Part shown: one piece after another, positions 2,779-51,000 of the stretch
How positions within the stretch are numbered: position 1 is the stretch's first letter
Layout: each line of letters opens with the position of its first letter
IMG/VR virus record: IMGVR_UViG_3300026484_000007
Coordinates: 124,001 to 188,000 of that record
Length of the DNA: 64,000 nt
Reading direction: 5' to 3' (one strand)
Translations under genes and position numbers: made by a program
Notes under the pieces: model-generated
Seen by the model: the letters and a program-made list of their open reading frames with translations, nothing else
What the model was told of the DNA's origin: nothing
Database searches by the model: none

Positions 2779-3198
2779 TTATTTCTTTTGAATCTCTTTT
2801 CTTATACTTTTAAATTTTTTAAGAGTTGTATGATACTCTTTTAAATCATCAAGATTATCAATATATTCTTTGAAAATTAATCCAAAGATGATTATTGAAA
2901 AGAAAGCAAGATAAGCACTTGCAGCACCAACAATCAAAGCATTCTTTAAAGTAATTATATCAAAAAATGATAAAATTACCAAAATTGGATTAAAGATAAC
3001 GCTTAAAAACGATACTCCGAAAATTACTAATAATGCAATTGCCGAAATATAAATAAGAAAACTAAAGATTTTTGAAAACGCCAAACAAGCAAAATCTTGA
3101 CTTTGCTTGTACTGATCGTATTCTTCATAACTCGATATTTTATCCATAAATAAAACATATCTTATAGTTTGAATGATACAGTTTTTATTTTTTAGCAC
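2779..3198 (-). CDS. hypothetical membrane protein
   Basis: Two long hydrophobic segments. Confidence 0.7.
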   Translation of the reverse strand: MLKNKNCIIQTIRYVLFMDKISSYEEYDQYKQSQDFACLAFSKIFSFLIYISAIALLVIFGVSFLSVIFNPILVILSFFDIITLKNALIVGAASAYLAFFSIIIFGLIFKEYIDNLDDLKEYHTTLKKFKSIRKEIQKK

Positions 3199-4024
3199 TT
3201 TTTCTCCTTTTGCTTTTTAGATATTTTTTAGTACGACTAAGATTTTCAATTAGTCCTTTAATTTTATTGTAAGTTGTATTACTTACTCTATAAAAATTTT
3301 TAAAACAATCTGGTCTGAATTTATCAAACCATTCCGTCGTTAAATGATAAAATTTAACTTCAAAATGATTTTCACGATCTCTACAAAAATCATTTACATC
3401 AAAATTTTCTATCTTTCTAATATATAAATTATAACATTTTTGATAAGAAAAACTATGCTTATGTTCTATAAATAAACTCCAAATAAATTCTTCGAAGTAT
3501 TTATTGTAATGTAATTTTTCTAAAACATAAAATTTTTTCCAAGTTAATTCCTTTTCAATCCATTGTATGTATTCGTCGAATAAATCCATTCTAAAAAACA
3601 TAGTCGAATATCTTCTATGCGTTTTTACTAATCTTTCATAAACAGGAATTAATGTTCCTGGTAATTGATTTTTATTAAAATAAGGAAAAGCTATTTCCCA
3701 ATTTATCCAATAAATATTCCCAACTATTGGACTGCTTGTAATATTATTAAAATTAATATGATCAGAATAAAGAATATCCAAATCAGTGTAAAAGATCTTT
3801 GAAAGATCTTTTTTGTCTCTTTTTAAAATTTTTAAAGCTTTTTGTAAAGTATAAAACTTTACCATATAATGTATTCCTTTCGATTTGAATCTTTTTTGGA
3901 TCTCTTTTGGAACACGTAAATTTAGAAAATCAAAATACTGATTACTAATCAATTGTTGAATATCTGCTTCGTATTGATAACATGGTTTGTCGTCGATAAT
4001 TCTTAAAAGTTTAAATCTTTCCAT
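3185..4024 (-). CDS. hypothetical protein, possible GT-A glycosyltransferase-like
   Basis: KFYTL...IFYTDLDILY resembles a DxD context; weak. Confidence 0.35.
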   Translation of the reverse strand: MERFKLLRIIDDKPCYQYEADIQQLISNQYFDFLNLRVPKEIQKRFKSKGIHYMVKFYTLQKALKILKRDKKDLSKIFYTDLDILYSDHINFNNITSSPIVGNIYWINWEIAFPYFNKNQLPGTLIPVYERLVKTHRRYSTMFFRMDLFDEYIQWIEKELTWKKFYVLEKLHYNKYFEEFIWSLFIEHKHSFSYQKCYNLYIRKIENFDVNDFCRDRENHFEVKFYHLTTEWFDKFRPDCFKNFYRVSNTTYNKIKGLIENLSRTKKYLKSKRRKSAKK

Positions 4025-4046
4025 TTAATCTCCTTTTTAATCTCTT

Positions 4047-4421
4047 TTAAAGATTTCTTGCAAGAATATAATGAACTCCTGTCGATAAATGTTTACATAA
4101 TTTCATCTTTTTGCAATCTGGGTTTGTTTTGTCTGGCGGTAATAATACAAAACTTGGCTCCATTAAAAGAGCATCTTTTAAATAAAAACAATATGCTTGT
4201 CTATATCTAAAATCGTGGCAATCACAATAAACCTTAATTTTAGAATTCGGTCTAAGTTTTTCCGTATTACATTCAATTTTTGCAGTGTACATTTGTGGCG
4301 CCGGTTTTGTCGTCGCCATAGTACTAATACAACTTAATTGATAACGATAAGGTTCAATATGTGTTTTAACGATTTTGATTGTTGGATCGCTTGGTTTGTT
4401 TACTCTTGATAAATCAATCAT
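4047..4421 (-). CDS. SWIM zinc-finger protein
   Basis: VYCDCHDFRYR...LCKHL (CxC...CxH). Confidence 0.8.
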   Translation of the reverse strand: MIDLSRVNKPSDPTIKIVKTHIEPYRYQLSCISTMATTKPAPQMYTAKIECNTEKLRPNSKIKVYCDCHDFRYRQAYCFYLKDALLMEPSFVLLPPDKTNPDCKKMKLCKHLSTGVHYILARNL

Positions 4422-4442
4422 TCAAGTCTCCTTTTTTAAAAT

Positions 4443-4686
4443 AAAAAAAGGACCCTTTAGTTCTCACCGCGGAGGCTTGCGGTATTCCGAGGAGCTTTCG
4501 GTCACGTTAACTTACTCACTCCCCGAAATCCGGGCCTCGTTGGATCCTACTAAAAGGTCCTGTTGACGGCCGAATTCGGTACTACTTAGTACCTACTGTT
4601 GGCCGCCTGCTAGGGATCTTTAGAAGATCCCCCTTGATAAGGTTTGGACCTACAACGTAAATCGTAGATCCTCTACCTTATCTACT
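4443..4686 (-). ncRNA. putative structured ncRNA 1 (~240 nt, four stem domains, two loop-E motifs)
   Basis: GC-rich intergenic island. Stems at 4636-4682, 4613-4631, 4565-4607 and 4450-4560, then a U-tract; directly downstream of the promoter at 4679-4722. Confidence 0.75.
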
Positions 4687-4722
4687 ATTTATATATCTAA
4701 TAAACGTTTACGAGTTCTAAAA
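4679..4722 (-). promoter_or_regulatory. phage promoter TTTTAGAAC...TATATAAATAG; 44 bp identical to 50901-50944
   Basis: Exact repeat upstream of both structured RNAs; same motif family as the cassette promoters. Confidence 0.75.
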
Positions 4723-4726
4723 CCCT

Positions 4727-5053
4727 CTAAAACTCTTTTAATGAAGAATCCACATCATCATAGTGTTTTTTTAGCACTATAGATTTGAATTTTCTTTTTA
4801 AATGAGTTTTTGCATAATCTTTTGCAGTCTCATCCACCCAGTTAAAAATTTTTTCAGGACTGATTCCATCTCGGTGCATTTTTATCATTTCTGCTAAAAT
4901 CTGATCTTGATAATCATATCCTGATTGAGCAAAATCTTTGAACTTAAAATGATCTTTAATAGATCGATCTGGTTGTTCATAATAAAGATTTTTTCTATTT
5001 TTTTTATTATGAACAGATTGAATACTCTTAAGAGTATCTCTGATTCTAGCCAT
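4727..5053 (-). CDS. hypothetical protein
   Basis: 108-aa ORF with SD. Confidence 0.7.
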   Translation of the reverse strand: MARIRDTLKSIQSVHNKKNRKNLYYEQPDRSIKDHFKFKDFAQSGYDYQDQILAEMIKMHRDGISPEKIFNWVDETAKDYAKTHLKRKFKSIVLKKHYDDVDSSLKEF

Positions 5054-5062
5054 TTTCTCTCC

Positions 5063-5905
5063 TTAAATTTCGACGGTTTTGCCAACGTTTTCATTATTAT
5101 GATACTTATACCAAGTAAGTTTACTATGGTAAGGTTTATCATTATCAAATAAATCTTTATATACTAAATTGAAGTCAGTTTCACAGCAATGAACGTTTCT
5201 TACAGGATCATCCCAATTACTATAATCATGAAAAATAATAATTTCTTCTGCTTCATTAGTATTTATTAATTTTTTTACAATTTTTAAAATTTCAAAATTT
5301 GCTTTTGTATCGCCAGATACTAAAATCAATTTTGGATTATCTAATATTTTAAATAAAAATCCACATGCTTTATAATGACCATGATTCGCAAGAATTAATC
5401 TTGTTTCTAAAGAAAGAGTATTAAAATTCCATTGATCCTGATCTTTATCAAAAATTGTAAAACGGATTTTATCGAAAGATCCTGTTATACTTAAATAATG
5501 AATATAAACCATAGGAACCCAAACAGACTTTCCATATTCATTCATTTTATTAAATTTTTCATCGAATATACTTTCAAATTCATATTTTAATATATCGGGA
5601 ACATAAATATTTGTGCTTTTTCCCAATACAAAATAATTATAATAAATTAACCCTTCAAGGTCAGCGATATGATCGAAATGAAGATGTGTTATAAATACTC
5701 CATCTATTGATTTCTGCGATGTCATATAACCTTTATCTTTTAATTTTTTAAGAACATTATGTCCACAATCCACAAGGAAATTATAATTTTTATCTCCTTG
5801 AGTATAATTTAATAAAAAACTTGCGCTTGTTTCTCCAAAGTCAAAAGCTCCAGCGCTACCAAGTACTTCGATTTTTAATTTTAATTCGTGATCTTTTTTA
5901 AACAC
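5063..5905 (-). CDS. MBL-fold metallo-hydrolase, Apyc1 (anti-Pycsar)-like
   Basis: LGSAGAF, LVDCG, THLHFDH, SGDT, IFHD, VH motifs. Confidence 0.75.
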   Translation of the reverse strand: MFKKDHELKLKIEVLGSAGAFDFGETSASFLLNYTQGDKNYNFLVDCGHNVLKKLKDKGYMTSQKSIDGVFITHLHFDHIADLEGLIYYNYFVLGKSTNIYVPDILKYEFESIFDEKFNKMNEYGKSVWVPMVYIHYLSITGSFDKIRFTIFDKDQDQWNFNTLSLETRLILANHGHYKACGFLFKILDNPKLILVSGDTKANFEILKIVKKLINTNEAEEIIIFHDYSNWDDPVRNVHCCETDFNLVYKDLFDNDKPYHSKLTWYKYHNNENVGKTVEI

Positions 5906-5927
5906 AATTTTCTCCTTGTATTATTTT

Positions 5928-7127
5928 TTATTTTAATTCATTTAGATAAATTTCTTTTCCTATTTTTATTTTATCTAATTTTTTGCGAGGATAATCTTCA
6001 TACATAGCTGAGCTAATTAAATTATCCCAACCATCTCCTTGACCTTGAATATTATATAGATAAAAATATTTACTTTTATCTATCAATTGTAAATTTTCTT
6101 TTACTTTCTTGATTATATCATTCATGTTTTTTATATAACGATCATCTAAATCAAACACAGTCTTTAATGATTTTAAGTATTTAGGTTTTTTTAATATTAA
6201 TTTTACGAAGTTAATTATTTCGATATCAGTAGCTTTATACATATAACTTAAATTTTTATATAAATATTTTTTAATAATAGAATATTCTTTATCAAAATAT
6301 TTATCCATTTTAGATTCATTAAAATATTTTTTAATTAATCTTGGGACATTTTCCATATCACGATCAACTTCGTCTGAAATCTTTTCTATTATTTTTATGT
6401 ATTTATATTTTCTTTTAATCATTTCATTTTCAAAGATTATAAAATTAAAATACATAGCAATTTTTAATTCTAGATGATCGTTGATGAATATTTTTGCTTC
6501 GTCAATGAAATCAAAATATGATTCGATTGTATCAACAATTTCTTTTAGATTTTCTTTTATGATTTTTTTTGATAAATTTTCATTTTTTTCATTTTTGAAT
6601 AAATCATTTAAATCATTAATATCATCATATATCATATAACATAGAGTCCCGATTTGAGAAAGATATTTATTATTAAATAAATAAAATTGCACCAATTCTG
6701 GCTTAGATTTGATTTTTGAAATAACTTCAAGCGTCGTGATTATATCTTCCATCATAGCTTCGTAATCGAAAACATCTAAAATTAATTTATTTTTAAATTT
6801 TTTTCTATTTTGAATCTTTTTTAAATTATTGATATCTTTACCCGCTACTTTAAAATATTTGGCAACTTCTTTTTTTGATATAAATACTCTACCATTCTTA
6901 ATTTTAAAATTATTTATATCTGGCTCGTAATTGAATTTTTCTTTTAATTCTATTAAACTATTATTTAAATTTTCTTCCGAAAATGGAATTTGATATTCAA
7001 AATCATCGAACATGTCTTCATATTTTTGAAGATATTCTTCCTCCGATAATTTTTTGATGTCTTCATTAAATCCTACTATAAAACTACTTGAACTACTATT
7101 GCTTACAAATCCTGTTCTAATTTTCAT
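5928..7127 (-). CDS. phage protein of the MKIRxGFVSNSSSSSF family
   Basis: Characteristic N-terminal motif; function unknown. Confidence 0.7.
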   Translation of the reverse strand: MKIRTGFVSNSSSSSFIVGFNEDIKKLSEEEYLQKYEDMFDDFEYQIPFSEENLNNSLIELKEKFNYEPDINNFKIKNGRVFISKKEVAKYFKVAGKDINNLKKIQNRKKFKNKLILDVFDYEAMMEDIITTLEVISKIKSKPELVQFYLFNNKYLSQIGTLCYMIYDDINDLNDLFKNEKNENLSKKIIKENLKEIVDTIESYFDFIDEAKIFINDHLELKIAMYFNFIIFENEMIKRKYKYIKIIEKISDEVDRDMENVPRLIKKYFNESKMDKYFDKEYSIIKKYLYKNLSYMYKATDIEIINFVKLILKKPKYLKSLKTVFDLDDRYIKNMNDIIKKVKENLQLIDKSKYFYLYNIQGQGDGWDNLISSAMYEDYPRKKLDKIKIGKEIYLNELK

Positions 7128-8312: not shown

Positions 8313-8709
8313 TTTTTTCTCCTTTTAAATTCAATTGTTTTTTAAGTAAAAAATCGATTATCTTAAGATAATATTTTACGATTTTATTTTTAATATAATC
8401 CCAAATATGTAATTTTTCAAACAGACCAATTATGCAATTTATAAATAAAATTATGAATAATAAAATATTTACGATAGGCATAAATATTGACAATACTCCT
8501 ATAAACGGATCTTCATTATCATTAGTAATTTTTATTTTAATTTTATTTTTCAATTCATTATAAATCTCTTTATTGGTCTTATTACTATAATTTCTTTTTA
8601 TCCAAGTAATTTCTTCTTTAATATATTTATACATTTCGCAGAGCATCATAATTCCGCTTAAAAAAACCGGAATTACATATACGATAATTAATGTATTAAT
8701 TAGCTCCAT
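8305..8709 (-). CDS. membrane protein (IFxPxxN family)
   Basis: Two TM segments. Confidence 0.7.
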   Translation of the reverse strand: MELINTLIIVYVIPVFLSGIMMLCEMYKYIKEEITWIKRNYSNKTNKEIYNELKNKIKIKITNDNEDPFIGVLSIFMPIVNILLFIILFINCIIGLFEKLHIWDYIKNKIVKYYLKIIDFLLKKQLNLKGEKND

Positions 8710-9743
8710 TACATTTCCTTTTCATTTAAAATTAAATGATAGCTATTCGGGGTTTCAATCCCTGCCTTTTTTTCTGCTAACTCTCTTTCTTTACAAGCCT
8801 CGCATTCCAAACATGGAACTGCAACTCCTTCTTTAATACTTGGATTATAACAAGTCCAAGTTTCATTTATAGGAACTTGTAATTCAAGAGCTCTTTTAAC
8901 TACTTCGTCTTTAGTATTATTTTTAAATGGAGCAAATAATCTAACTTTTTTAACATCATTCAATGATAATAATTCATTTAGTCTATACGCAAATTCTGGA
9001 GTAATATCCCAGTAATCTCTATGCTCTCCATAAGCTTCTTCTGAATGTTTATGGATTCCAAGACCAATTTTGACCTCATCGTATCCATTATTCAAAGCTA
9101 TAATTTCTCCAATCACTGTAGAAATAACTGAGAATAATAGATTTCTACTTGGAGTATAAAATTGGTGATTTGCTTGATCTTCGATAGATCCAGAATCTCT
9201 CATCTGAGCCCAGATATCTAAGAATTCATCAAATAAAGGTTTAAGATTCAATTTCTTAACCCCAATAATTTTACCATTAGAAATATATTTCTTCTGATAA
9301 ATATTTACTAAATTATCAAAAGCTTGCATTTCTACAAAATTCTTTTGATTGTAATTAAAATTAATTACAAAAACATCATAGCCTTGATAAAGAGCTTCGG
9401 CGCAAAGAGTTGCTGAATCTAATCCTCCACTCATTGAAATAATAGCTAATTTTCCCTTTCCCGGTAAATATTTACCAAGATATTTATCAAGCAAATCATT
9501 AAAATCTTTTGAAGCCATTTTATTTAATCTTTCTCTCCATTTATTATTCATTTTTTCATTAAGAAATTTTACCATTTCTCTTTTTGGATTTTTTCTATTT
9601 TTAACAGATGGTGCTCTTAATTTACTCCCAATATCTATCATAGTTTTCTTATGACAATTTGGGCATTCGATGATATAATCATCAAAAGGTGAGTGTTTTT
9701 TACTGAACCCACAATTAATACAAAGATACTTATTGTTTTTCAT
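8709..9743 (-). CDS. queC: 7-cyano-7-deazaguanine synthase with N-terminal Zn-ribbon extension
   Basis: SMSGGLDS, YTPSRNLLF, TWTCY, CLECEACKER; start moved to the SD-preceded ATG at 9743. Confidence 0.9.
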   Translation of the reverse strand: MKNNKYLCINCGFSKKHSPFDDYIIECPNCHKKTMIDIGSKLRAPSVKNRKNPKREMVKFLNEKMNNKWRERLNKMASKDFNDLLDKYLGKYLPGKGKLAIISMSGGLDSATLCAEALYQGYDVFVINFNYNQKNFVEMQAFDNLVNIYQKKYISNGKIIGVKKLNLKPLFDEFLDIWAQMRDSGSIEDQANHQFYTPSRNLLFSVISTVIGEIIALNNGYDEVKIGLGIHKHSEEAYGEHRDYWDITPEFAYRLNELLSLNDVKKVRLFAPFKNNTKDEVVKRALELQVPINETWTCYNPSIKEGVAVPCLECEACKERELAEKKAGIETPNSYHLILNEKEM

Positions 9744-9981
9744 TCTTTCCTCCTTTAATGTATTCAATAATATTTTTTTCGTATTTTTTAACTACATAAA
9801 CTACGCCAATTATTACAGCAAATAACCAAGAACCTACAATACTTAAAAAAAGCATTAATATAAATTCTTCTCTGATATCAGCTGCCGATTTATACTCAAT
9901 AATCTCACTTGATCTCATGAACTCAATACTTATATACAACGCTGCAATTGAACCAATAATCCATAATATAAAAAATAACAT
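9730..9981 (-). CDS. small membrane protein
   Basis: Two TM segments. Confidence 0.65.
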   Translation of the reverse strand: MLFFILWIIGSIAALYISIEFMRSSEIIEYKSAADIREEFILMLFLSIVGSWLFAVIIGVVYVVKKYEKNIIEYIKGGKNEKQ

Positions 9982-10930: not shown

Positions 10931-12343
10931 TTAAATTTTTTTTCTAATATCTTCAAGAGAATATTCTTTTTGAATTTTACCATTTAAAAATACAGTTTCC
11001 ATCGCTGGAATTAAATTTTTATCATCAATACCTGGAATTGGATTTTGAAGACAAATTAATTTACCATTTTTATCTTTATAAACTTCAAGATAACCTTTTA
11101 ATGATTTTTTTCCAGAATCCGTAATTGGATCTTTAAAAACATCATGTCCTTTAATCTCGTTATTTTCTAAAGTTTCGATGTAACTGCATTTGCAAGCAAA
11201 ACTATAAGTATCTCTTGTTAATCCTGTTTGACCAATGTAAGTTCCTGATCCGAATACAAAAGTCTCAGCCGCTATTAATGGTAAATCTTTATATCCTTTT
11301 ACTGTAAAAGTTTCAAGAATATTTTTAATAGTATCTTTATTGATTCCATCTCCCCAAAGAATACCATATTTTGATGAAAAATATTTACTATTTGAAAATT
11401 GATCAAATACTCCATTAACAAGCATGATTTTTAGCATTTTCCCAAGAACTTCAATTGGATCCCCACTGTCTGGTCTAATTACTAATTTTTGATTAGGTCT
11501 TTCACTTAGAAGTTTTCTAATTTTACCAGATGGATTAGTAACCATATCTGTAAATTTAAACACATCATAACTATCGGCTACAAAGCTCATAATTGGTGCG
11601 TTTGGGTTTTCAAGAAGCATTCTATAAACAAATTCTTCTTCTCCATCGATCGAAGCGTTCGCTGTCGTGGTTGAATGTTCAGTAGCAAATACACTATATG
11701 AGCTAATTTTTTCATGGTAATAATCTCTACAAAATTTTAAACTGTGAAAATTATCAGTACCAAGAAAAATAGTATTATGCGCAAATCCAGAGATTGCTGC
11801 GCTTTCCACTGATGTCATACTTCTATCTCCGAAATTATGATAAGCAAATTTTGCCCATTCTGGGTCCCCGTATTTACAAAGCATATCATATACTTCTTTT
11901 GATTTCGTAGCTACTGTCGTTGGATACCACACTTTCATTAAAAGTGTTTCTACAAATCCTACTACCCACGGTACTTTTTTATCAGTACTTTCGATTAATA
12001 CCATTGGTATTTGAGCTGGAACCGCAGTTCCTTCTGGAAGAGCTTTAATTTTTATAGGTAATTTTCCATCAAGCTCTTCTGCTATATATTTCCATCCTTC
12101 ATAAGGAAATGATATCCCATGAAGATCTGCAAATTCTTTTGCTTCTTCAATCATTTCTATAGTAATTTTTTGACTTAAATATTCTTTAAGAATATATTGA
12201 AGCCCTACAAAAATCACTTCTCCATTATTATCCTGTACTCTTCTCGCTGTAAGATAATCTTGCATAAATACCATATTTTTTGGATATTGAAATGCGTGTC
12301 CATATTTATAACTATCTCCTAACATTACTACATTTACTTTCAT
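10931..12343 (-). CDS. nadV: nicotinamide phosphoribosyltransferase
   Basis: DSYK, HNFGDR, ATEHS, DSYD, IRPDSGDP, KDPITDSGKKS. Confidence 0.93.
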   Translation of the reverse strand: MKVNVVMLGDSYKYGHAFQYPKNMVFMQDYLTARRVQDNNGEVIFVGLQYILKEYLSQKITIEMIEEAKEFADLHGISFPYEGWKYIAEELDGKLPIKIKALPEGTAVPAQIPMVLIESTDKKVPWVVGFVETLLMKVWYPTTVATKSKEVYDMLCKYGDPEWAKFAYHNFGDRSMTSVESAAISGFAHNTIFLGTDNFHSLKFCRDYYHEKISSYSVFATEHSTTTANASIDGEEEFVYRMLLENPNAPIMSFVADSYDVFKFTDMVTNPSGKIRKLLSERPNQKLVIRPDSGDPIEVLGKMLKIMLVNGVFDQFSNSKYFSSKYGILWGDGINKDTIKNILETFTVKGYKDLPLIAAETFVFGSGTYIGQTGLTRDTYSFACKCSYIETLENNEIKGHDVFKDPITDSGKKSLKGYLEVYKDKNGKLICLQNPIPGIDDKNLIPAMETVFLNGKIQKEYSLEDIRKKI

Positions 12344-13970: not shown

Positions 13971-14104
13971 TGAAAACTCGTGATCCTAAAACGTTGCGCT
14001 TCATTGGATACACAAAGATATATACGAGTTCTAAAAATTTTAGAACTGCTTTTATATCGCTTGTATCTAAAAAAGATGCTACGTAGAAAATCAAGTTTTT
14101 CAAA
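13971..14104. repeat. ~130-bp imperfect palindrome, copy 1
   Basis: Centre GTTCTAAAA-A-TTTTAGAAC with complementary arms; other copies at 23947, 31661 and (half) 62256. Confidence 0.85.
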
Positions 14105-23946: not shown

Positions 23947-24080
23947 TGAAAAACTGAGATCCTAAAACGTTGCGCTTCATTAGATACACAAAGATATATA
24001 GCAGTTCTAAAATTTTTAGAACTGCTTTTATATCGCTTGTATCTATTTTAGATGCTACATTGAAAATCAAAGTTTTCAAA
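23947..24080. repeat. ~130-bp imperfect palindrome, copy 2
   Basis: Near-identical to 13971-14104, with the same flanking motif and terminator. Confidence 0.85.
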
Positions 24081-31660: not shown

Positions 31661-31795
31661 TGAAAACTCGTGATCCTAAAACGTTAAGCAACGATAGATA
31701 TCTAAAGATATATAGCAGTTCTAAAAATTTTAGAACTGCTTTTATATCGCTTGTATCTAAAAAAGATGCTACGTGGAAAATCAAAGTTTTCAAAA
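31661..31795. repeat. ~130-bp imperfect palindrome, copy 3
   Basis: Near-identical to copies 1 and 2. Confidence 0.85.
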
Positions 31796-38909: not shown

Positions 38910-39509
38910 TCATTTGATAAAGTCTAAGGGCATAAGCCCTTTTTTAACTTCATCCCAAAGAGCCCAAATTGCAAACTTCCCAGTTTCACTAGAAAGTTCC
39001 TTGAACTCCTTAATAAAGTCATCTATCTCTTTTTTTAGAGATTCATTATCCCAAATTAATGGGATAATTTTTGCGAAATGGGCTCTTGACCCTAATTCGC
39101 AGATTAATTTTACCTCTTCCGAGGTGATAGACGGTTTTACTAAACCGTCCAATTTCGCGGCCACAGTTGCCGCAAAATCCATCGCAGCTTCAATTGCTGC
39201 AATAGATTTTTTGTTGTACGATAGATAGCCGCTGCTATCTATCGTTACTAAACTTCTATCAGAAAACTTAACCCTCGGGTTAAGTTTTCTGATTTTTTCA
39301 AATCGTGGATCGATCAGTCTCTGATCAATAATCCATGTCTCGCCTCCACACATGAACGCCATGTCGTTCGGGAGACTTAATAATGGGTACGATGTGTACC
39401 CAAACTCAATCCCTGAAACAATTCCAGGGAATTCAATACCAGGGATAGCACTTACCATCCCCGTCAATTTTTTTTCAATTTTTTCCTTAGCTACTCTTCT
39501 TCTAGCCAT
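38910..39509 (-). CDS. hypothetical early-type protein (GC-richer)
   Basis: SD-preceded ATG at 39509; cassette-type promoter upstream. Confidence 0.7.
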   Translation of the reverse strand: MARRRVAKEKIEKKLTGMVSAIPGIEFPGIVSGIEFGYTSYPLLSLPNDMAFMCGGETWIIDQRLIDPRFEKIRKLNPRVKFSDRSLVTIDSSGYLSYNKKSIAAIEAAMDFAATVAAKLDGLVKPSITSEEVKLICELGSRAHFAKIIPLIWDNESLKKEIDDFIKEFKELSSETGKFAIWALWDEVKKGLMPLDFIK

Positions 39510-39634
39510 TCTTTTTTCCTCCTTACCATTTTTTACATACGTTCGCCTTACACGGCGAACAAAAAAACTCGCGAGAAACAAGTGGTATGCCTTGTTCCTC
39601 ACTATAATAATATCAATGATTTACAATCGACTTC

Positions 39635-39675
39635 TTAATTATTAATTAATTATTAATTAATTATTAATTAATTAT
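39635..39675. repeat. 11-bp tandem repeat (TTAATTATTAA), about 3.6 copies
   Basis: Seen directly, just downstream of the RHH gene. Confidence 0.7.
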
Positions 39676-39682
39676 CCCAAAC

Positions 39683-40084
39683 TCACCAAGCTACCGAAAT
39701 TGGAGAAGCTGGAGATGATTGAGCTGGAGCCGTTTGTTGAGAAGCTGCTGGCGGATTTGAATGATTTGATGCAATTGTATTAGATTGCTGATCTTCAAAA
39801 GATACTTCTTCCTCAACCGAATCTACTAAAGATTCAATCTTTCCTTGATCTCTAAATTCTTTTTTTAGATAATATTTTTGATATTCTTTAGATTCAGAAA
39901 ATCTTTTTATAGCAATATTAATTAAACTCGGGATACTTTCTGGATATGTTTTTGATAAAATTTCATATGTTTCATCATCTAAAACGAAAGAATATTTTTT
40001 AGATGAATGAGGTTGTTGTGTTTGTTGAGGCTCTGGAGCCATTTGAGGTTGATTGAACATTTGATTTTGCATTTGATTTTGCAT
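39683..40084 (-). CDS. ribbon-helix-helix protein (ParR-like candidate) with disordered tails
   Basis: KKYSFVLDDETYEIL...IPSLINIAIKRF pattern. Confidence 0.55.
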   Translation of the reverse strand: MQNQMQNQMFNQPQMAPEPQQTQQPHSSKKYSFVLDDETYEILSKTYPESIPSLINIAIKRFSESKEYQKYYLKKEFRDQGKIESLVDSVEEEVSFEDQQSNTIASNHSNPPAASQQTAPAQSSPASPISVAW

Positions 40085-40808: not shown

Positions 40809-41720
40809 TTATAATACATAACCCTTTACATTCTCGAATTCATATAATTTATCTTTCGGAAATACTACGTTTGGTGGAAATTCCACATCTTCTAAAAGAT
40901 AAGCTCCACCTCCAGCAATAATTACTTTTTCCGATGTCCCAAGAATTTTCTTTTCTGAAACAAGAATACTATTGAATAATTTTTGAATAAAATTATTTTT
41001 TAATTCAGTGATCATTTCTGGAATTCCTTCGACTTCTCTTCCACCGAAAACATATTTTTTCTTTAATAAAATTTTAATTGCTTCTTGTTCAGTAAATTTA
41101 TCTTTAAATTTTGCTTCTAGCCAATTAGTAAAAGGTCTTATGATACTTACGACTCCGTGAGTAGGAAACGATTTACATTTAGCTCTAATTGGCATATTAT
41201 CTTGGAAAGCTAAAAAGTTGATAGTATTGAATCCAATATCGATCACTGCCGCACTTTCAGGAGTTGTTCCAGTATCATGAATATAACTATAATATACTCC
41301 AGCGCCTTGAGGAATTATATTAATATTATTGATGTTTAACGTAATTCCATTTACAGTGATTGTTTTTAATTTTTCAACGAATCTTTCTTTTTCGCTCCAG
41401 TCGGCTAAAGCTAAACCAGTTCTTAAATCAATATCCTCGATCAATTTTCCATCTTTAATTAAATTTAATTTATTTAAAACATGAAATAAAATCAGTGGAC
41501 CGAATTCTTCTAAAAATTCATATTTAGTTGTTGTAAAACTTTCATCGATTGCTACGTCTCCAACTCTATATTTTTTACCGTTGTATTCGTAAATTTCGTC
41601 TTCGCCATAATTAATTCCAGTATCAATAGCGAAAGAGATCGCTGTGGGTAATTTGAATAATTTTCCATTCGCAGATAATTTTGTACTACTATACCCTATA
41701 TCTAAACCTAATCTATACAT
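40809..41720 (-). CDS. actin-like ATPase, ParM/StbA family
   Basis: GLDIGYSSTK, IPQGAG, VIDIGFNT, IIAGGGA, FENVKGY. Confidence 0.88.
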   Translation of the reverse strand: MYRLGLDIGYSSTKLSANGKLFKLPTAISFAIDTGINYGEDEIYEYNGKKYRVGDVAIDESFTTTKYEFLEEFGPLILFHVLNKLNLIKDGKLIEDIDLRTGLALADWSEKERFVEKLKTITVNGITLNINNINIIPQGAGVYYSYIHDTGTTPESAAVIDIGFNTINFLAFQDNMPIRAKCKSFPTHGVVSIIRPFTNWLEAKFKDKFTEQEAIKILLKKKYVFGGREVEGIPEMITELKNNFIQKLFNSILVSEKKILGTSEKVIIAGGGAYLLEDVEFPPNVVFPKDKLYEFENVKGYVL

Positions 41721-42400
41721 TAATTCTCCTTTTTAATAATTTTAGTTTTTTCTGTTGTCTGAGCATGTTCTTTGTATTGCTGAGCTGCTAGCTTAATTAT
41801 TTCTTTATTTCTCTTTTTTGGATCTTTCTTAATTTTTGCGTATGAATCTAAAAAAGATTCTTTTGCTTTTTTAATAATATTATTGTAATTTTTTTTATGT
41901 CTTTTTAATAATTTATAGAATTCATCTTTTTCGATTAAGTAATCGTTTGATAAATGTAAATTATACATTTTATTAATAAGATCCATAAAAGATTCTTCTA
42001 GTTCTTTTTTAAATAAATCTACGAAACCTTTTTTATGCAAATAATGATAAAAAGGACTATCTTTATCAATAATGATCTTAAAAAGATGCTTCTGAGTTTC
42101 AAAAATATATCTAACGGGAAATTCTTGATATTCTTTGTCTTTATTGAATTTAGCCGCTTCTAATCCTAAATTTACTATTTTACAATAATCATGATATAAT
42201 TTTTCTAAAATAAATTCATCTGATATTTTATAAGGATGCTTATTTTGAGGATCGTATTTTTCATCGATGCTTTTAAAAAAATATAATAAAGTATCTTCGA
42301 CGAATTCTTTAGCAAGGGTTTGGGAATTTCGATGATTATTATCAATGATTACCGCTGAATGTTTAGCGAGATCCTCAGCTTTTTCTTTTAATTTTTTCAT
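41720..42400 (-). CDS. hypothetical protein
   Basis: 226-aa ORF with SD. Confidence 0.7.
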   Translation of the reverse strand: MKKLKEKAEDLAKHSAVIIDNNHRNSQTLAKEFVEDTLLYFFKSIDEKYDPQNKHPYKISDEFILEKLYHDYCKIVNLGLEAAKFNKDKEYQEFPVRYIFETQKHLFKIIIDKDSPFYHYLHKKGFVDLFKKELEESFMDLINKMYNLHLSNDYLIEKDEFYKLLKRHKKNYNNIIKKAKESFLDSYAKIKKDPKKRNKEIIKLAAQQYKEHAQTTEKTKIIKKEN

Positions 42401-42445
42401 TTTTTCTCCTTTTTAATTTTTTTAAGCAAATAAAAAACGGGAAGC

Positions 42446-42829
42446 TTAAGTTAGATAAACTAACTCGCTTTCCCAAAATTCGGCGCTAAGCGTCGATTGC
42501 TGAAGCTCTTTTTTTAGAGCCTCAGCCAATCTCATGACCGCGGGTTTGTATAATTCGCGGTTGCAAAATTGAGGGTTGCATGTACCCTCAATTTTGATCA
42601 CACTCTCACCACCGACTGGGCATCCCCAGTCGGTATTATAAACTACGGCCGCGGGCGAAACCGCAGCAGAAATGTATTCGCCGAATTCTTCGAATTCGGC
42701 TTTAGCCAATTGCTGCCAAAGGGCAGCAATTTTATTTGCTAACTCAGGAGCCGCAACTCCTGAGATATTGTGGAAGTAGCCTTCCGCTACCCCCACAACC
42801 ATTCTAAAAGATATTGTTGTCTTCTTCAT
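42446..42829 (-). CDS. putative SAM / SAM-AMP lyase-like protein
   Basis: Y64, E75 and Q111 spacing plus LAEALKKELQQSTL resemble phage SAM lyases (from recall). Confidence 0.5.
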   Translation of the reverse strand: MKKTTISFRMVVGVAEGYFHNISGVAAPELANKIAALWQQLAKAEFEEFGEYISAAVSPAAVVYNTDWGCPVGGESVIKIEGTCNPQFCNRELYKPAVMRLAEALKKELQQSTLSAEFWESELVYLT

Positions 42830-42955
42830 TCTTTCTCCTTTTGATTTTTTTTGCTATTTATATATCAATGTTAAAAAAGGAGTTTTTGAAAATTATTTAA
42901 TAATTATTTAATAATTATTAAATAAAAAATAAAAATAAAAAAACAGAGAGTGGGC

Positions 42956-43114
42956 TTAATACAGTCCACTCTCAACCCCTTCTCTCCAATGAGAGAAAAG
43001 AGTATTGCGCGCCTTAACCGGCGCATTTGGGTGAGTTGTTCTCACCCATTTTGTAAATTTTCTGTATTCGGCGCGAGTGATACTCACACCATTAATTATT
43101 TTCTTTCTCATCAT
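42956..43114 (-). CDS. small early-type protein (52 aa)
   Basis: Manual translation MMRKKIINGVSITRAEYRKFTKWVRTTHPNAPVKARNTLFSHWREGVESGLY; promoter, SD and terminator present. Confidence 0.7.
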   Translation of the reverse strand: MMRKKIINGVSITRAEYRKFTKWVRTTHPNAPVKARNTLFSHWREGVESGLY

Positions 43115-43198
43115 TTCTCCTTTTTATTTTTTTTGCTATTTATATATCAATGATAAAAAAAGAGTTTTTAAAATTAAAAAATAACACCGCGGAGAAGA

Positions 43199-43396
43199 CT
43201 ACTTTTGTAATCTTTCCGCGATGTTATTTAGTAACATCGATTCTGTTATTTTTGATTCGGCCTCGAGAATGAGGTCGTACGCCTCACTCCCGAATTCGAA
43301 TTTTTCTTCTAATTTTTCAAGAAGGTTATACACCTCCTCGAGTTTTTTTTTAGATTCCTTTTCAAGGAATCTAATTTCTTTTTTTGCTAAATTCAT
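43199..43396 (-). CDS. small early-type protein
   Basis: Cassette promoter and SD. Confidence 0.7.
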   Translation of the reverse strand: MNLAKKEIRFLEKESKKKLEEVYNLLEKLEEKFEFGSEAYDLILEAESKITESMLLNNIAERLQK

Positions 43397-43458
43397 TCTT
43401 TCTCCTTTGATTTTTTTTGCTATTTATATATCAATGATAAAAAAGGAGTTTTTTAAAT

Positions 43459-45015
43459 TTATTTTAACACGAAAACATTGTTCTTTGTTCGTGTAATTCC
43501 TACATAAAGTAATCTTAAAAATAAATTATAATCGGTTTCATAAAGATTAATGAAGTCTCTTAAATCTATAAAAACTTCATCCAAAGTTTGTCCTTGAAGT
43601 TTATGGATTGTGCTCGCGTAAGCATAAGTAACATCAGCACATAAATCATTGAAATTGTATGCAAATTTCCAAAAGTTCTTTTTAGAATTTTTAGAGATCT
43701 TTCTTTGATTATTCATTGTTTTCGCAATATCAAAAACTGCTTCTTTATATAATGGAAAAAGATCTTCTTTAGATCCATCTCCCAAAGGAACTAAAAATTT
43801 ACTTTTATTTTCTGCTGTTAATAAAAAAGCATTGAATTTTATAGGTTTAAGTAAATACGAAGCTTTATTATCTTCAAATAAAAATGGATAGAGATCTTTT
43901 AAAGATGCTAAATAGTCTGGTAAGATTTTTCTAAGTCTATCGATGACTTCTTGAAATTCTTTAATCTTATTCAAAGTAAAAGTTACCAATTCTGGTTCTT
44001 TGATAACTTTAGTCTCTTCTCCATTTGTGAAAATATTGCAAGTGCTTAGTAAATTTCTATCAGTTAATTCATTAGAATTATTAGAAAAAACTATATAATT
44101 ATACGGAGCATTAAATATTAATTTATCTCCTTTTGAATATAATTCATCAGGATTTTTTACTTCTGGATCAAATCTTCTAAAATGGATATTATAATAATTT
44201 ACAAAATTATTTGTAAAAGATCCAATTTTGATTCTTTTTTCATTTGAGAATGATTCTGTTGAATCCGTTAAATCAACAGAATCCATCGGTAAAATTGTCT
44301 CTCCGAATCTATGCTCTAAAAACTTATTAAAAAAATCATTAAATTCAAATTCTCCATATACATGAAAATGATCTATTAAAGATACAATCTCTGAAAGCGG
44401 AGCTTTTTTCTTATTTTCTTCGTATTCTTTAATTAAAAATCTTACTTTTTCAAAGATCTCAAAAAGATCGTTTTTTGTTCTAAGTATCTTTTTTAGAACT
44501 ATTCTATCATAAGGTTCGTCAAAAATTGGAGATCTTGTTTCTTTTACTGGAGGTAATTGATATGGATCTCCAATAAATAAAATATCAAAATTTTTTAAAT
44601 ACTTATTAATGATCCAAAAAAGATCCTTATCGATCATTGAAATTTCGTCGATAATAAAAAAGTCTGCAGAGATCATCATATCTCTTAATTTCGGGACAAA
44701 AATTCTTTCACCGAATTCATTAATATCTGGACGAATTTCAAAATAAGAATGAATTGTCGTAATATTTACTCCTTTTATATTTTGCTCAGATAGCATATTA
44801 TGAATTACTATTGAACTTTGATGAGTAGGAGTTAATATTTGAACGGATCTTTTTTGCTCTTTTAACATTTTTAATAATTCAACGAGAGTCGTCGTTTTTC
44901 CTGTTCCTGCTGATCCAGTAAGGATCAGTTTTCTACCATAACCAAGTTTTTTTGGATCTTCTTTAAAATACTCTAAGACTTTTTGCTGTTCTTCATTTAA
45001 TTTTATTTCTCCCAT
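43459..45015 (-). CDS. Dda/RecD-like SF1B helicase
   Basis: GSAGTGKTT, IIDEISM, GDPYQLPPV, TIHKLQGQT, YVGITR. Confidence 0.9.
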   Translation of the reverse strand: MGEIKLNEEQQKVLEYFKEDPKKLGYGRKLILTGSAGTGKTTTLVELLKMLKEQKRSVQILTPTHQSSIVIHNMLSEQNIKGVNITTIHSYFEIRPDINEFGERIFVPKLRDMMISADFFIIDEISMIDKDLFWIINKYLKNFDILFIGDPYQLPPVKETRSPIFDEPYDRIVLKKILRTKNDLFEIFEKVRFLIKEYEENKKKAPLSEIVSLIDHFHVYGEFEFNDFFNKFLEHRFGETILPMDSVDLTDSTESFSNEKRIKIGSFTNNFVNYYNIHFRRFDPEVKNPDELYSKGDKLIFNAPYNYIVFSNNSNELTDRNLLSTCNIFTNGEETKVIKEPELVTFTLNKIKEFQEVIDRLRKILPDYLASLKDLYPFLFEDNKASYLLKPIKFNAFLLTAENKSKFLVPLGDGSKEDLFPLYKEAVFDIAKTMNNQRKISKNSKKNFWKFAYNFNDLCADVTYAYASTIHKLQGQTLDEVFIDLRDFINLYETDYNLFLRLLYVGITRTKNNVFVLK

Positions 45016-46778: not shown

Positions 46779-46905
46779 TTCTTTATCCTTTTTTTAATTT
46801 TTTTAAGCAAATAAAATAATTTTGCGAATTCGACGATTTTCCGAACTCGCAATCAAAACACTAATTATATCTTTAAAATCTAAAGAAAAAGAAGACCTGC
46901 GAGAG

Positions 46906-47193
46906 TTATAATTTAACTCTCACCGGGTCTTCAAACCACTCCATTGTTGCGTTAGATGGAAGAATGATCTTCCATCTTTTTCTGGCAGTCGCCACTACCT
47001 CTTTTGGGTTGGTAGTGGCAAACACTGCCATGTCGCCGCTACGACCTGCAAGGCCGTAGACAGCGACTTTTATGTATTTGTCGCTGTCGTATGGTTTTAC
47101 CCATACGACAGCGACTTTAATTCCCTGAATATTTTGACTTGGCGCCTTTTGCGCCAAGTCGATTAATTCAAAAATATTTAAATTCAATTTCAT
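46906..47193 (-). CDS. small early-type protein
   Basis: Cassette promoter, SD, GC-richer. Confidence 0.7.
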   Translation of the reverse strand: MKLNLNIFELIDLAQKAPSQNIQGIKVAVVWVKPYDSDKYIKVAVYGLAGRSGDMAVFATTNPKEVVATARKRWKIILPSNATMEWFEDPVRVKL

Positions 47194-47272
47194 TCTTCCT
47201 CCTTAATTTTTTTTGCTATTAGATTATCAATGATTTAATTAATCATTATAAAATAAAAAGAAAAAGAAGAGG

Positions 47273-47539
47273 TTAGAGGTATTCGATCTTAACGATCTCC
47301 TCCTCTAAAAACACTCTTCTTTTTCTCTCTCCTCTCGGAGAGATTAAGTAGGCTTCTTTCAGCCCACCTTTCCCCGAAAGGAGATATCCCGTGCTTTTGC
47401 TGAATGCCCATTCAGCAAAAGCATTATAAATCCCGTATCCTCCCGCACTATAGTACGGGAACGGGATCACTTCCGAATTCCTTTTTTCCCAAATCAGTTC
47501 GAGCTTCCACTCGAACTGATATTTGAAATCTCTTTTCAT
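47273..47539 (-). CDS. small early-type protein
   Basis: Cassette promoter and SD. Confidence 0.7.
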   Translation of the reverse strand: MKRDFKYQFEWKLELIWEKRNSEVIPFPYYSAGGYGIYNAFAEWAFSKSTGYLLSGKGGLKEAYLISPRGERKRRVFLEEEIVKIEYL

Positions 47540-47645
47540 TCTTCCTCCTTAATTTTTTTTTGCTTAATTGATATCAATGAGGTTGTGGAAGAGTTCTAAA
47601 AATTTTAATGAAATAAAAAAAATTTTGATAAAAAGAAAGCTTGAG

Positions 47646-47930
47646 TCAAATGGCTCTTTCGAGCCATTTGACTGCCTTCTTCAAGGCTTTCACCTTGAAG
47701 TGAAGGTCGTCGACCTTCACTTTGAGCTCAAACTCTTCTGAGCTCAAAATATCCATATGCATGAGGAAGTCAACTTCCCCATGCATTTTAATATACTCGG
47801 CTTCAGCCGCTTCAAGAGCGGCTTCAGCAGCCTCAGTTTCCCTAAGAGCGGCTTTCGCCGCTCTTAGATTTTTTTTCTCTTCTTTAAGAGCGGCTTTCGC
47901 CGCTCTTAATAATTTTTCAATTTTTTCCAT
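47646..47930 (-). CDS. small helical early-type protein with an LRAAKAAL duplication
   Basis: Cassette promoter and SD. Confidence 0.7.
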   Translation of the reverse strand: MEKIEKLLRAAKAALKEEKKNLRAAKAALRETEAAEAALEAAEAEYIKMHGEVDFLMHMDILSSEEFELKVKVDDLHFKVKALKKAVKWLERAI

Positions 47931-48052
47931 TCTTCCTCCTTGAAATTTTTTTTTGCTATTAGATTATCAATGATACATAGATGTAATTCTAAAAAAAATT
48001 TTAAAAAAATTAAGAAAATTTAATAAATAAAAAATTAAGAAAAAAGCAACGG

Positions 48053-48247
48053 TTATTCCGGAGCGGGTAGCTCAACTACCTCAACTCCGTAACTAGGGTT
48101 GCTTTCTTCTTGGAGGGCGCGGACATATGCCTCCGCGTCCTCCTTTTCCCAGAATACTTTGGATACGGAACTGATTCCGTATCCAAAGTAACCATCTACG
48201 AAGTAGTACGCTACTCCGTAGATTTTTTTATTTTCTAAATTTTCCAT
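48053..48247 (-). CDS. small early-type protein
   Basis: Cassette promoter and SD. Confidence 0.7.
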   Translation of the reverse strand: MENLENKKIYGVAYYFVDGYFGYGISSVSKVFWEKEDAEAYVRALQEESNPSYGVEVVELPAPE

Positions 48248-48357
48248 ATCTCCTCCTTAATTTTTTTTGCTATTAGATTATCAATGATACATAGATGTAA
48301 TTCTAAAAAAAATTTTAAAAAAATTAAGAAATAAAAAGAGATTGGATGATCTGGAGT

Positions 48358-48561
48358 TTAAAACTCCAAGTCATCCAAATCATCTAATTCTAGCAGCTTC
48401 TCTAAAGCTGCTGCTTTTTCAGCAGCAGCTTTTGCTACTTTAGCCTCATACGAGGCCAAAATTGCGGCTTCTTTAGCCGCTTTTTTTGCTGCTGCAGCTT
48501 TTGCTGCAGCTGTTTCTGAGGCTCTTTGAGCCTCAGAAACTCTTTCAATTAGAAATTTCAT
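48358..48561 (-). CDS. Ala/Lys-rich microprotein with acidic tail
   Basis: SD-preceded ATG at 48561. Confidence 0.7.
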   Translation of the reverse strand: MKFLIERVSEAQRASETAAAKAAAAKKAAKEAAILASYEAKVAKAAAEKAAALEKLLELDDLDDLEF

Positions 48562-48681
48562 TCTTTCCTCCTTAAATTTTTTTTGCTTAATTGATATCAA
48601 TGATATAAAACGAAGTTTTAAAATAATTTACATGTACTTAAATATACTTAAATACTTAAAATTGCTCACAAAGGATATAAT

Positions 48682-49317
48682 ATGTTTTTTATAAATGAAA
48701 TGACGGAGAAAAAAATAAATAATATCGCTAATATTATTATCGAATTAAATACTCTTTTAGAAGAAGCGGCAGGGAAATACTCAATGCCTTTAACTGGAGT
48801 TCCAAAAGCAGGAAAAAGTTTAATATCAGGTGGTTTAGATCATGTTTATAAAAAAAGCAAAGATAAATATTTTATAGAGAAATTATCGCCGGATATGGAA
48901 GGAAAATGGACTTTTGATACCGGAAAGTTAGAATTAGCTAGAGAAATGAAAAATAAATTAAAAGACAAAAATGAGTTTTTTGATGATAGATTCGTAAAAA
49001 TAAAAAATACTCATATTCCTAATTTAATTAAAAATTTTGATAAAACTGTGTTTGATTTGGGAGGTATTCCTTCGAAAGAAAACGAGAGTTTTATCGATAA
49101 TATACAAAAAAGTTCAATTTTAAATGATAAAAAATTCGTACCAGTCGTTCTTTCTCCTGATAGACAGAAATCGTACGAATGGCAAAAGTTTTTCAATGAA
49201 AAATTCGAAACCGATCCTATAATTTATACTCCAAATTGGAATTTTAAAAAAGATATAAAACAACAATCGATATATCATGCTAATGAACTTCTTAACCGAA
49301 TCCAAAAAAGATTATAA
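48682..49317 (+). CDS. P-loop ATPase of the Csx3-associated (AAA-type) family
   Basis: GVPKAGKS Walker A, SPDMEGKW (cf. CPDGEGxW, from recall), VFDLGG Walker B; convergent with csx3. Confidence 0.7.
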   Translation: MFFINEMTEKKINNIANIIIELNTLLEEAAGKYSMPLTGVPKAGKSLISGGLDHVYKKSKDKYFIEKLSPDMEGKWTFDTGKLELAREMKNKLKDKNEFFDDRFVKIKNTHIPNLIKNFDKTVFDLGGIPSKENESFIDNIQKSSILNDKKFVPVVLSPDRQKSYEWQKFFNEKFETDPIIYTPNWNFKKDIKQQSIYHANELLNRIQKRL

Positions 49318-49338
49318 ATAAAAAAACATAATCCCTGC

Positions 49339-49635: not shown

Positions 49636-49701
49636 CGTCTTTCTCCTTTTGATTTTTTTGCTATTAGATTATCAATGATATACAAATCAGTTCTAAAAAA
49701 A

Positions 49702-50944: not shown

Positions 50945-51000
50945 TAATTTAAACCATTTTTTCTAACGACAAAAAAACGCGTGAGATCTTAAATAGATCA

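Follow-up and report, generated by a model that had tools for sequence, protein, structure and literature searches.

What fills a 305-nt intergenic gap that is rich in GC and holds no open reading frame, in phage DNA with a GC content of only 27.5%? The gap lies between two minus-strand ORFs (4727–5053 and 4047–4421) in a 64,000-nt stretch, called the window here, which spans positions 124,001 to 188,000 of IMG/VR record IMGVR_UViG_3300026484_000007, a 272.6-kb viral contig. Window DNA was recovered in hydrothermal-vent metagenomes (DNA runs), and its genes lie almost all on the minus strand. One window gene (1471–2715) encodes the N-terminal fragment of a split RNA polymerase β′ subunit, and the source is therefore considered a jumbo phage that encodes a multisubunit polymerase of its own. 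Isolated phages include no close relative: RNA polymerase matches are ~24% identical, and a blastn search of the gap's RNA region against 50,697 phage records gave no match. The phage also encodes Csx3 (PF09620, E = 1.5e-26), an Apyc1-like metallo-hydrolase and NAMPT, all of which resemble counter-defence genes.

Downstream of the gap lies a gene for a 124-residue SWIM zinc-finger protein (4047–4421, minus strand), which served as the syntenic anchor in our comparisons. Its assignment is based on an invariant C-x-C...C-x-H pattern and on the closest ESM Atlas clusters, which are phage SWIM proteins. To our knowledge, phage structured RNAs besides tRNAs are rare and mostly uncharacterised; the original prediction placed one here, an RNA of no recognised family with two loop-E motifs and possibly a decoy. 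We asked whether such an RNA exists, whether it has relatives, and what it might do.

The RNA, its fold and its transcription signals

The RNA spans approximately positions 4443–4690 of the minus strand (~245 nt) and coincides with a GC island of ~50% (0.49–0.56, against 0.275 for the window). Folding of the minus strand (4440–4688) gave an MFE of -110.1 kcal/mol, compared with -68.5 for shuffled sequences (z = -9.55), a value reached by 0 of 200 shuffles; the plus strand folds more weakly (z = -4.07). MFE and centroid folds are identical. All the stems listed in the original prediction are present in the MFE fold, and the strand asymmetry of the fold, together with G-U pairs that are invariant in all four homologues described below, supports an RNA read from the minus strand. 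No frame of the region holds an ORF, as had been stated, and the homologues have none either.

Reading 5′ to 3′ on the minus strand, hairpin H1 (4636–4682) pairs GAUAAGGU with ACCUUAUC around an inner stem of GGAUCUACG and CGUUGUAGGUCC, and hairpin H2 (4612–4633) pairs GGGGAUCUU with AAGAUCCCU under a CUA loop; both are found in the MFE and centroid folds. Hairpin H3 (4565–4607; GGCGGCC/GGCCGUC, MFE fold) carries an inner hairpin at 4575–4597, composed of AGUA, a 6-bp stem, an AAGU loop and GAA. The remainder is a 3′ domain of 111 nt (4450–4560), closed by GGACCUUUUAG and CUAAAGGGUCC and followed by U7. The hairpin loops of the whole RNA read AUUUA, CUA, AAGU and ACG, and almost no single-stranded sequence is left free for base-pairing. 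H1, H2 and H3 are specific to this lineage. We found no homologue of them, since relatives carry one or two other AU-rich hairpins in their place, and with no counterpart to compare, their support is thermodynamic. The closest SWIM relative (P0002, 70% identity) has no RNA within the 99 nt upstream of its SWIM gene, and the three 5′ hairpins therefore stay without homologues.

Promoter-like and terminator-like signals flank this structure. An upstream promoter motif, TTTTAGAACT, is located at 4713–4722 (minus strand) and belongs to a phage-specific class with 23 copies in the window against 4.35 expected. An AT-rich -10-like box, TTATTAGATATATAAAT, follows at 4687–4703 and aligns with the ATTAGATAT and CATTGATAAT boxes of neighbouring cassettes. 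Transcription probably starts at ~4683–4695; both boundaries of the transcript are placed from such signals. The original claim that the RNA has its own promoter thus stands as regards the enriched, phage-specific motif, but not as regards a conventional one, as a sigma-70 scan found no promoter upstream of the RNA. The 3′ end was correctly called as U7 (4443–4449) and has the make-up of an intrinsic terminator: the 11-bp stem P1 ends at 4450 and the U7 tract comes next, a layout shared by all homologues. A simple terminator scan misses this site because its loop limit is 8 nt and the folded domain enclosed by P1 is ~90 nt. The RBS of the SWIM gene is ~12 nt past this terminator. Overall, the RNA gene is constructed like the small-gene cassettes of this phage, with a promoter, a product (here an RNA instead of an ORF) and a stem with a U-run; the TTTTAGAACT class heads many such promoter-RBS-small ORF-terminator cassettes, and also stands upstream of homologous RNAs in other phages.

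The same class heads a second RNA gene in the window, a paralogue of ~135 nt at ~50.9 kb (50773–50907, minus strand; MFE -67.1 kcal/mol, z = -10.4). The two genes share a 50-nt block, comprising the promoter and the first ~12 transcribed nt, in which the 4443–4690 gene is 98% identical to window positions 50895–50944; its -10-like box falls within this block. The paralogue adopts a three-way fold that ends in a U-run and includes an S-turn-type hairpin, GAAA-GUUC[UUCG]GAAC-GAGUA, in the opposite orientation. It sits among promoter-product-terminator cassettes, and the next cassette's own promoter directly follows. Its place in this array, with a promoter of its own and the next one adjoining, points to independent transcription, and RNAs of this kind accordingly behave as separate genes. 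More generally, perfect GC-rich hairpins are hugely enriched in this phage (199, against 5.9 in shuffled sequence), and they cluster in small-ORF cassettes of the common promoter class, even inside the genuine Csx3 coding sequence.

A vent metatranscriptome contains a 163-nt contig that lies wholly inside the RNA (4505–4667) and differs from it at 12 positions, thus representing a ~92–93% identical variant. Over positions 3000–6500, the same run also yielded contigs on the downstream gene (4188–4422) and none on the other 2.9 kb. These observations are weakly consistent with transcription of the variant, since they concern contigs and not reads, DNA carry-over is possible, and conservation may bias the alignment. 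The prediction of a discrete, non-coding and highly structured phage RNA that carries a promoter-like motif and a terminator has held up, and we are confident that positions ~4443–4690 encode a genuine structured non-coding RNA.

That RNA belongs to no family on record, as originally supposed. Rfam 15 (4227 models) gave 0 matches in the whole window at gathering thresholds; relaxing the limit to E ≤ 10 for region 4300–4900 produced only chance snoRNA and miRNA matches outside the RNA, and in six homologous loci no match at E ≤ 1 fell on the RNAs. ARAGORN found 0 tRNA or tmRNA genes in the 64 kb. Two well-known classes were considered and rejected on structural grounds. The RNA has four separate domains and no central bubble, as well as no Rfam 6S match, which sets it apart from 6S RNA; and it lacks the several GGA hairpin loops of CsrB/RsmZ-type CsrA sponges. 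As for a riboswitch or attenuator, the MFE and centroid folds agree on one structure, and linkage to the downstream gene is frequent but not obligatory.

Homologues of the 3′ domain and a second RNA type

Because sequence searches of IMG/VR and of the metagenome collection yielded no further copy of the RNA, its relatives were sought through the SWIM protein. In IMG/VR, exact peptide searches with both neighbouring genes returned the source contig only, as did DNA-pattern scans with the promoter and 5′ end, an exact sarcin-ricin loop (SRL) and a broad core pattern. When the metagenomes were scanned for the broad core pattern, the source contig came up together with 7 chance matches in coding regions of unrelated, GC-richer contigs; a known JGI homologue was not recovered, showing that this collection is incomplete for these phages. 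In vent metagenomes, about 21–22 SWIM relatives were found (45–73% identity); in relatives, the gene for the RNA polymerase β′ N-terminal fragment comes after the SWIM gene. Three lineages (L005/6/7, L013 and L017/18) carry an RNA of ~110 nt immediately before the SWIM gene, headed by the same class of promoter and ending in a U-run, and a fourth locus (L020) contains a 3′ fragment of it. We refer to these RNAs as type A.

The type A RNAs correspond to the 3′ domain of the window RNA (4450–4560, minus strand). Covariance model R1, built from four sequences with the window sequence among them, scored 83.8 bits (E = 4.6e-19) at 4443–4561, and nhmmer gave E = 4.7e-22. The window RNA displays the complete type A architecture: P1 (4550–4560 paired with 4450–4460), a purine-rich internal loop (UAGGAU, 4544–4549, opposite UGAGAA, 4461–4466), P2, P3 (4484–4529) and the apical S-turn module, with the U-run after P1. 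Each core also folds well by itself (z = -4.8 to -7.8). In 138 kb of related loci, R1 recognised only its own four sequences and the L020 fragment.

Proposed as a check on the original prediction, covariation gave a positive result for the 3′ half of the RNA and left out the 5′ hairpins, which have no homologues. The RNAalifold consensus consists of three 12-bp helices (36 pairs); compensatory changes occur in 18 of these 36 pairs, and 91% of cells are paired. None of 500 shuffles reached the observed covariation on any of five measures, and when partners were slid by 1–3 columns, pairing dropped to 35–62%; as these statistics come from four distinct sequences, the query included, they are indicative and not final. 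Invariant blocks in the alignment are GGA, UU-N-GGGG, AGUA, CGAAA, CCU, UGAGA and GGGU. The 3′ half of the RNA belongs to a new RNA family with comparative support. Strain variants in the DNA runs contain one substitution in the RNA, at position 4635, and because this is a single-stranded linker it is uninformative on covariation. Many related phages (L008, L014–16, L021–23, L032, L034, L036 and L037) lack the RNA in front of their SWIM gene, and it is thus dispensable.

More distant phages, whose SWIM proteins are 45–53% identical to that of the window, carry a different RNA with the same promoter class, type B (~210–250 nt; L010/L011, L012, L033 and the 281-kb contig of L035). It too is located upstream of the SWIM gene, or one gene further up in L033. 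Folding z-scores range from -7 to -10 (L010, L035), with -3.2 for L012, and 24 of 50 consensus pairs show compensatory changes among five sequences. The 5′ hairpin of type B RNAs has a covarying stem and a loop containing GGAG or GGAA. These RNAs also have an internal loop of UAGUAR/GUGAGG that fits AGUA/GAG, and a terminator hairpin of their own, with 15 consensus pairs in the alignment and a perfect 19-bp stem in the L035 fold. An nhmmer search found no copy of type B in the window. Types A and B may be homologous, as their similar UAG.../UGAG... loops suggest.

Conserved loops and the sarcin-ricin resemblance

Two non-Watson-Crick modules are fixed in type A RNAs while the helices that flank them covary. 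The first is the symmetric purine-rich internal loop beside P1, 5′-UGGAY/5′-UGAGA in relatives and UAGGAU/UGAGAA in the window, which by inspection is compatible with tandem sheared G.A pairs. A K-turn was considered for this loop and rejected by inspection, as the G.A positions lack an adjoining 3-nt bulge. The second is the apical S-turn module (4496–4516), with AGUA at 4513–4516 and CGAAA at 4496–4500, both invariant in the four type A sequences.

The original prediction identified two AGUA/GAA motifs, and both are present, in H3 (4575–4597) and at the apex of the 3′ domain (4496–4516); as far as the primary sequence goes, each matches the bulged-G S-turn consensus (5′-AGUA-3′/5′-GAN-3′ with flanking helices). 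The H3 hairpin is the sole strict AGUA-stem-GAA match in the RNA region. Across the window, the bare pattern occurs about as often as chance predicts (28 seen, 26.8 expected), and enrichment was therefore dropped as an argument; because the pattern is common by chance, its significance here derives from conservation in homologues. S-turns recur beyond the apical module: H3 and the paralogue each have one, and type B RNAs have one in the form AGUA/GAG.

The likeness to the SRL that had been proposed holds for relatives of the window RNA more fully than for the RNA itself. In the three short RNAs (L005, L013 and L017), the apical loop reads U-AGUA-G-GAGA-C-GAA-A (AGUAGGAGACGAA), where helix 95 of E. 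coli 23S rRNA reads CU-AGUA-C-GAGA-G-GAC-C (AGUACGAGAGGAC). The two match at 10 of 13 positions, as does the preceding U, and the closing Watson-Crick pair under GAGA is flipped in a compensatory manner, G-C in the phage loop versus C-G in E. coli. When 245 kb were scanned on both strands with an SRL descriptor (AGUA-N-GNRA-N′-GAN with N-N′ pairing), the matches were the E. coli control, the L005, L013 and L017 RNAs, and one chance site without a flanking helix (window 41160–41172). The descriptor did not match the window RNA, as neither of its S-turns has a GNRA tetraloop. At the apex, the G-GAGA-C of relatives gives way to an A.C pair with a 4-bp stem and an ACG loop above it, and the S-turn of H3 is capped by a 6-bp stem. 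The window RNA has kept the S-turn but not the tetraloop, and is thus not a full SRL mimic in itself. Any conserved function is therefore independent of the SRL portion that toxins cut and GTPases touch.

Compared with SRL helix 95 and synthetic SRL minihelices, then, the phage RNAs share an AGUA/GAA bulged-G S-turn atop a G-rich stem, and the full 13-nt element (S-turn, Watson-Crick pair and GAGA) is alike only in the short type A relatives. They differ in the G-C closing pair, in the replacement of the tetraloop by a 4-bp stem and triloop in the window, and in being encoded as a cassette with its own promoter and terminator and not as part of a ribosomal RNA. This comparison was made at the sequence level, and the three-dimensional geometry of the phage loops is a predicted one. 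Loop-E and S-turn modules also occur in bacterial 5S rRNA loop E, the T-box specifier loop and the lysine riboswitch. Purine-rich symmetric internal loops with possible tandem G.A pairs (UGGAY/UGAGA) and AGUA/GAA S-turns that may serve as recognition modules are common to these RNAs and ours; their architectures are unrelated, and the corresponding Rfam models gave no match even at E ≤ 10.

Possible functions and their meaning

We tentatively favour an RNA that acts in trans, by binding or decoying a protein, and that is made early as a stand-alone transcript. The cassette design, the unrelated context of the paralogue, the strong terminator, the scarcity of single-stranded sequence and the invariant loop nucleotides on covarying stems together suggest a stand-alone, abundant and stable product whose S-turn and G.A modules are recognised by protein. 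The gene would yield a stable RNA of ~245 nt, in which three GC-rich hairpins precede the ~110-nt type A core; the core would form a long irregular hairpin displaying the UGGAY/UGAGA loop and the apical AGUA/GAA S-turn, and both modules may be protein-binding surfaces. Because relatives contain a full SRL look-alike, the partner may be one that normally reads the ribosomal SRL, and the RNA could sequester, as a decoy or sponge, a factor specific for the bulged-G S-turn of that loop. Its terminator would also limit read-through into the SWIM and RNA polymerase genes. Counting against this reading are the absence of the RNA from many relatives, the frequency of the AGUA-stem-GAA pattern by chance, and the small number of distinct sequences (four) behind the core.

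The main competitor, which we judge plausible but somewhat unlikely, is a cis-acting leader of the SWIM/RNA polymerase β′ operon, either an attenuator or a put/EAR-like element for processive antitermination. Such a leader would control what share of the transcription begun at the early promoter continues into the RNA polymerase genes, possibly under feedback from a phage protein bound to the conserved loops. Known examples are HK022 put, the Bacillus EAR element and the rplJL-rpoBC attenuator, and the layout is alike: a structured RNA after a promoter and before RNA polymerase-related genes, with a terminator between. Types A and B share one position although the SWIM proteins involved are just 45–73% identical, the U-run lies ~12–45 nt from the next RBS with no TTTTAGAAYT motif or recognisable promoter in between, and the metatranscriptome contigs fall on the RNA and the downstream gene and on no other flank. 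However, many relatives have the same operon without the RNA, the L033 RNA is followed by a different gene, and the paralogue, with its identical promoter, runs directly into the promoter of another cassette. In type B, termination falls to a separate hairpin and no competing antiterminator is evident; nor does any Rfam leader or antiterminator family match. The phage RNA differs from known leaders in being optional among relatives and in having a paralogue in an unrelated context, as well as in its lack of an Rfam leader match.

Three lesser explanations each conflict with particular results. Given the abundance of GC-rich hairpins (199 against 5.9) and their clustering in small-ORF cassettes with the same promoter, the RNA could be one more hairpin cassette, generic or degenerate, from which the ORF has disappeared and which serves no specific function, the hairpins perhaps providing heat stability or protection from RNases. 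This seems improbable, as the core is kept without an ORF in four lineages, its covarying stems and invariant loops indicate selection on the RNA, and no homologue retains an RBS or start codon. A sponge for a factor that recognises GGA or Shine-Dalgarno sequences (CsrA, or the anti-SD of the 30S subunit) through exposed GGA or GGAG has slightly poorer prospects still. In its favour, the type A internal loop has an invariant GGA, the apical loop of short members exposes AGGAG, and all type B RNAs present GGAG or GGAA on a covarying 5′ hairpin; but the hairpin loops of the window RNA are free of GGA, most of its GGA triplets are in stems, and a CsrA site would not require invariant AGUA and CGAAA. 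A CU-rich, anti-SD-like short transcript is present elsewhere in the same phage, and would fit such a sponge. Finally, an intergenic region rich in inverted repeats might function as DNA, for example as a replication origin, a packaging site or a recombination hotspot. We consider this very improbable, because folding is strand-asymmetric (z = -9.6 versus -4.1), the invariant G-U pairs would turn into A-C mismatches if the opposite strand were read, promoter and U-run both point the right way, and a contig is present in an RNA library.

Returning to the trans-acting protein-binding or decoy RNA, its most plausible target would be a host ribonuclease or toxin directed at the SRL, with a translational GTPase as an alternative. 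VapC20, in work cited in PMC13294483, and SRLase1, common across conflict loci (bioRxiv 10.64898/2026.09.18.752725), are bacterial toxins that cleave the SRL. We prefer an SRL-directed decoy or inhibitor because of the SRL look-alike and the counter-defence-type genes of this phage. The specific proposal, a ribosomal RNA decoy that soaks up or inhibits VapC20-like or SRLase-like abortive-infection effectors of the host, is nonetheless doubtful, and the missing tetraloop of the window copy weakens the decoy mechanism. Under such a mechanism, the short relatives, with their complete SRL look-alike, could be cleavable mimics, and the window RNA, with S-turns but no scissile tetraloop, a non-cleavable inhibitor.

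Phages are known to counter RNA-targeting defences with decoy or substitute RNAs, including pseudo-ToxI antitoxin RNAs, RNA anti-CRISPRs and phage tRNAs that replace cleaved host tRNAs. By analogy, the window RNA may be a further small non-coding RNA with which a phage mimics an RNA of its host or of a defence system; it would be expressed from an early-type promoter, and its genome has many counter-defence-like genes. It differs from these examples in that it contains neither repeats or CRISPR-like units nor a tRNA fold. We know of no phage RNA decoy that imitates ribosomal RNA, and our literature search found no precedent for SRL mimics or decoys in phages.

In conclusion, type A is a covariation-supported new RNA family with no counterpart in Rfam or the literature, carried by uncultivated vent jumbo phages that encode an RNA polymerase, and in its short members the conserved tip echoes a functional element that is among the most highly conserved in the ribosome. 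The phage genome is also unusual in assembling its early transcripts, even those that encode proteins, from GC hairpins. If the RNA were a cis-acting leader, it would be a new regulatory RNA in control of an operon for a multisubunit phage polymerase. As a decoy, it would extend phage RNA mimicry from tRNAs, CRISPR repeats and antitoxin RNAs to ribosomal RNA, and SRL-cleaving toxins would be implicated as anti-phage effectors; a decoy of such toxins would be the first anti-defence RNA to imitate rRNA. On either reading, the type A core is a small, thermostable S-turn scaffold well suited to structural work.

Further non-coding RNA genes in the window and in related phages

A second non-coding RNA gene of ~135 nt was found on the minus strand at window positions 50773–50907, and over the promoter and the first 12 nt it shares 98% identity with the gene for the target RNA, the structured non-coding RNA near the start of the window. 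The transcript adopts a three-way fold (z = -10.4 for folding energy against shuffled sequences) that includes a hairpin with a reversed S-turn, the AGUA/GAA bulged-G module, in the form GAAA-GUUC[UUCG]GAAC-GAGUA. No homologue of this RNA was found in the related vent-metagenome loci that were compared.

In more distant vent jumbo phages, the syntenic position of the target RNA is occupied by a different structured RNA family of 210–250 nt, type B (L035, 2686–2926; L010, 428–676; L011, 311–559; L012, 3350–3566; L033, 852–1062). Its members comprise a 5' hairpin with a GGA loop, a UAGUAR/GUGAGG internal loop and their own terminator hairpin, and 24 of the 50 consensus pairs show compensatory changes; type B RNA had no match in Rfam.

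A pyrimidine-only transcript unit of ~55 nt lies on the minus strand at 50226–50279, its promoter motif (50301–50310) being followed by a CU-rich RNA and a U-run. The CCUCC/CCCUCCUU runs of this RNA resemble the anti-Shine-Dalgarno sequence of 16S rRNA; possible pairing partners are the very strong AAGGAGG ribosome-binding sites of the phage itself, or GGAG loops. A further intergenic stretch on the minus strand (59565–59765, z = -4.0), in which four GC hairpins come after a Shine-Dalgarno sequence and a 5-codon ORF, is possibly another small RNA or a structured leader.

Genes linked to the RNA and to transcription

A SWIM zinc-finger protein of 124 aa is encoded at 4047–4421 on the minus strand. 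Throughout the phage clade its gene is closely linked to that for the RNA polymerase beta' N-terminal part, the two being immediate neighbours in L005, L010 and L019, and the protein, with relatives P0002–P0022, may be a polymerase-associated factor. Divergent promoter pairs, consisting of back-to-back TTTTAGAACT motifs, are repeated three to four times in the window (14027–14047, 24003–24023, 31717–31737 and 62309–62318), each flanked on both sides by a near-identical transcribed leader of ~60 nt (e.g. GUAUCUAAAAAAGAUGCUAC...).

Three genes of counter-defence type lie close to the target RNA, all on the minus strand: a metallo-beta-lactamase-fold hydrolase (5063–5905), whose weak match to the anti-Pycsar protein Apyc1 scored 29 bits, under the cut-off of 50; a product we take to be QueC-like from reading its translation by eye (8709–9767); and a nicotinamide phosphoribosyltransferase (10931–12343; 34–38% identity to phage NAMPTs).

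Csx3 and the hairpin-built early cassettes

Within the early cassette array, two units away from the second RNA gene, a 98-aa ORF on the minus strand (49339–49635) matches PF09620 at E = 1.5e-26 and encodes a ring nuclease, Csx3/Crn3, which is probably a phage enzyme directed against type-III CRISPR. GC islands of consecutive perfect hairpins (39000–40000, 42400–43500 and 46800–51000) correspond to small-ORF cassettes, and 199 hairpins had a stem of 7 bp or longer, against 5.9 in shuffled sequences. Even the coding sequence of Csx3, a genuine gene, is composed of 7–11-bp hairpins. This pattern suggests that early mRNAs are under selection for heavy structure, perhaps for thermostability or RNase resistance.
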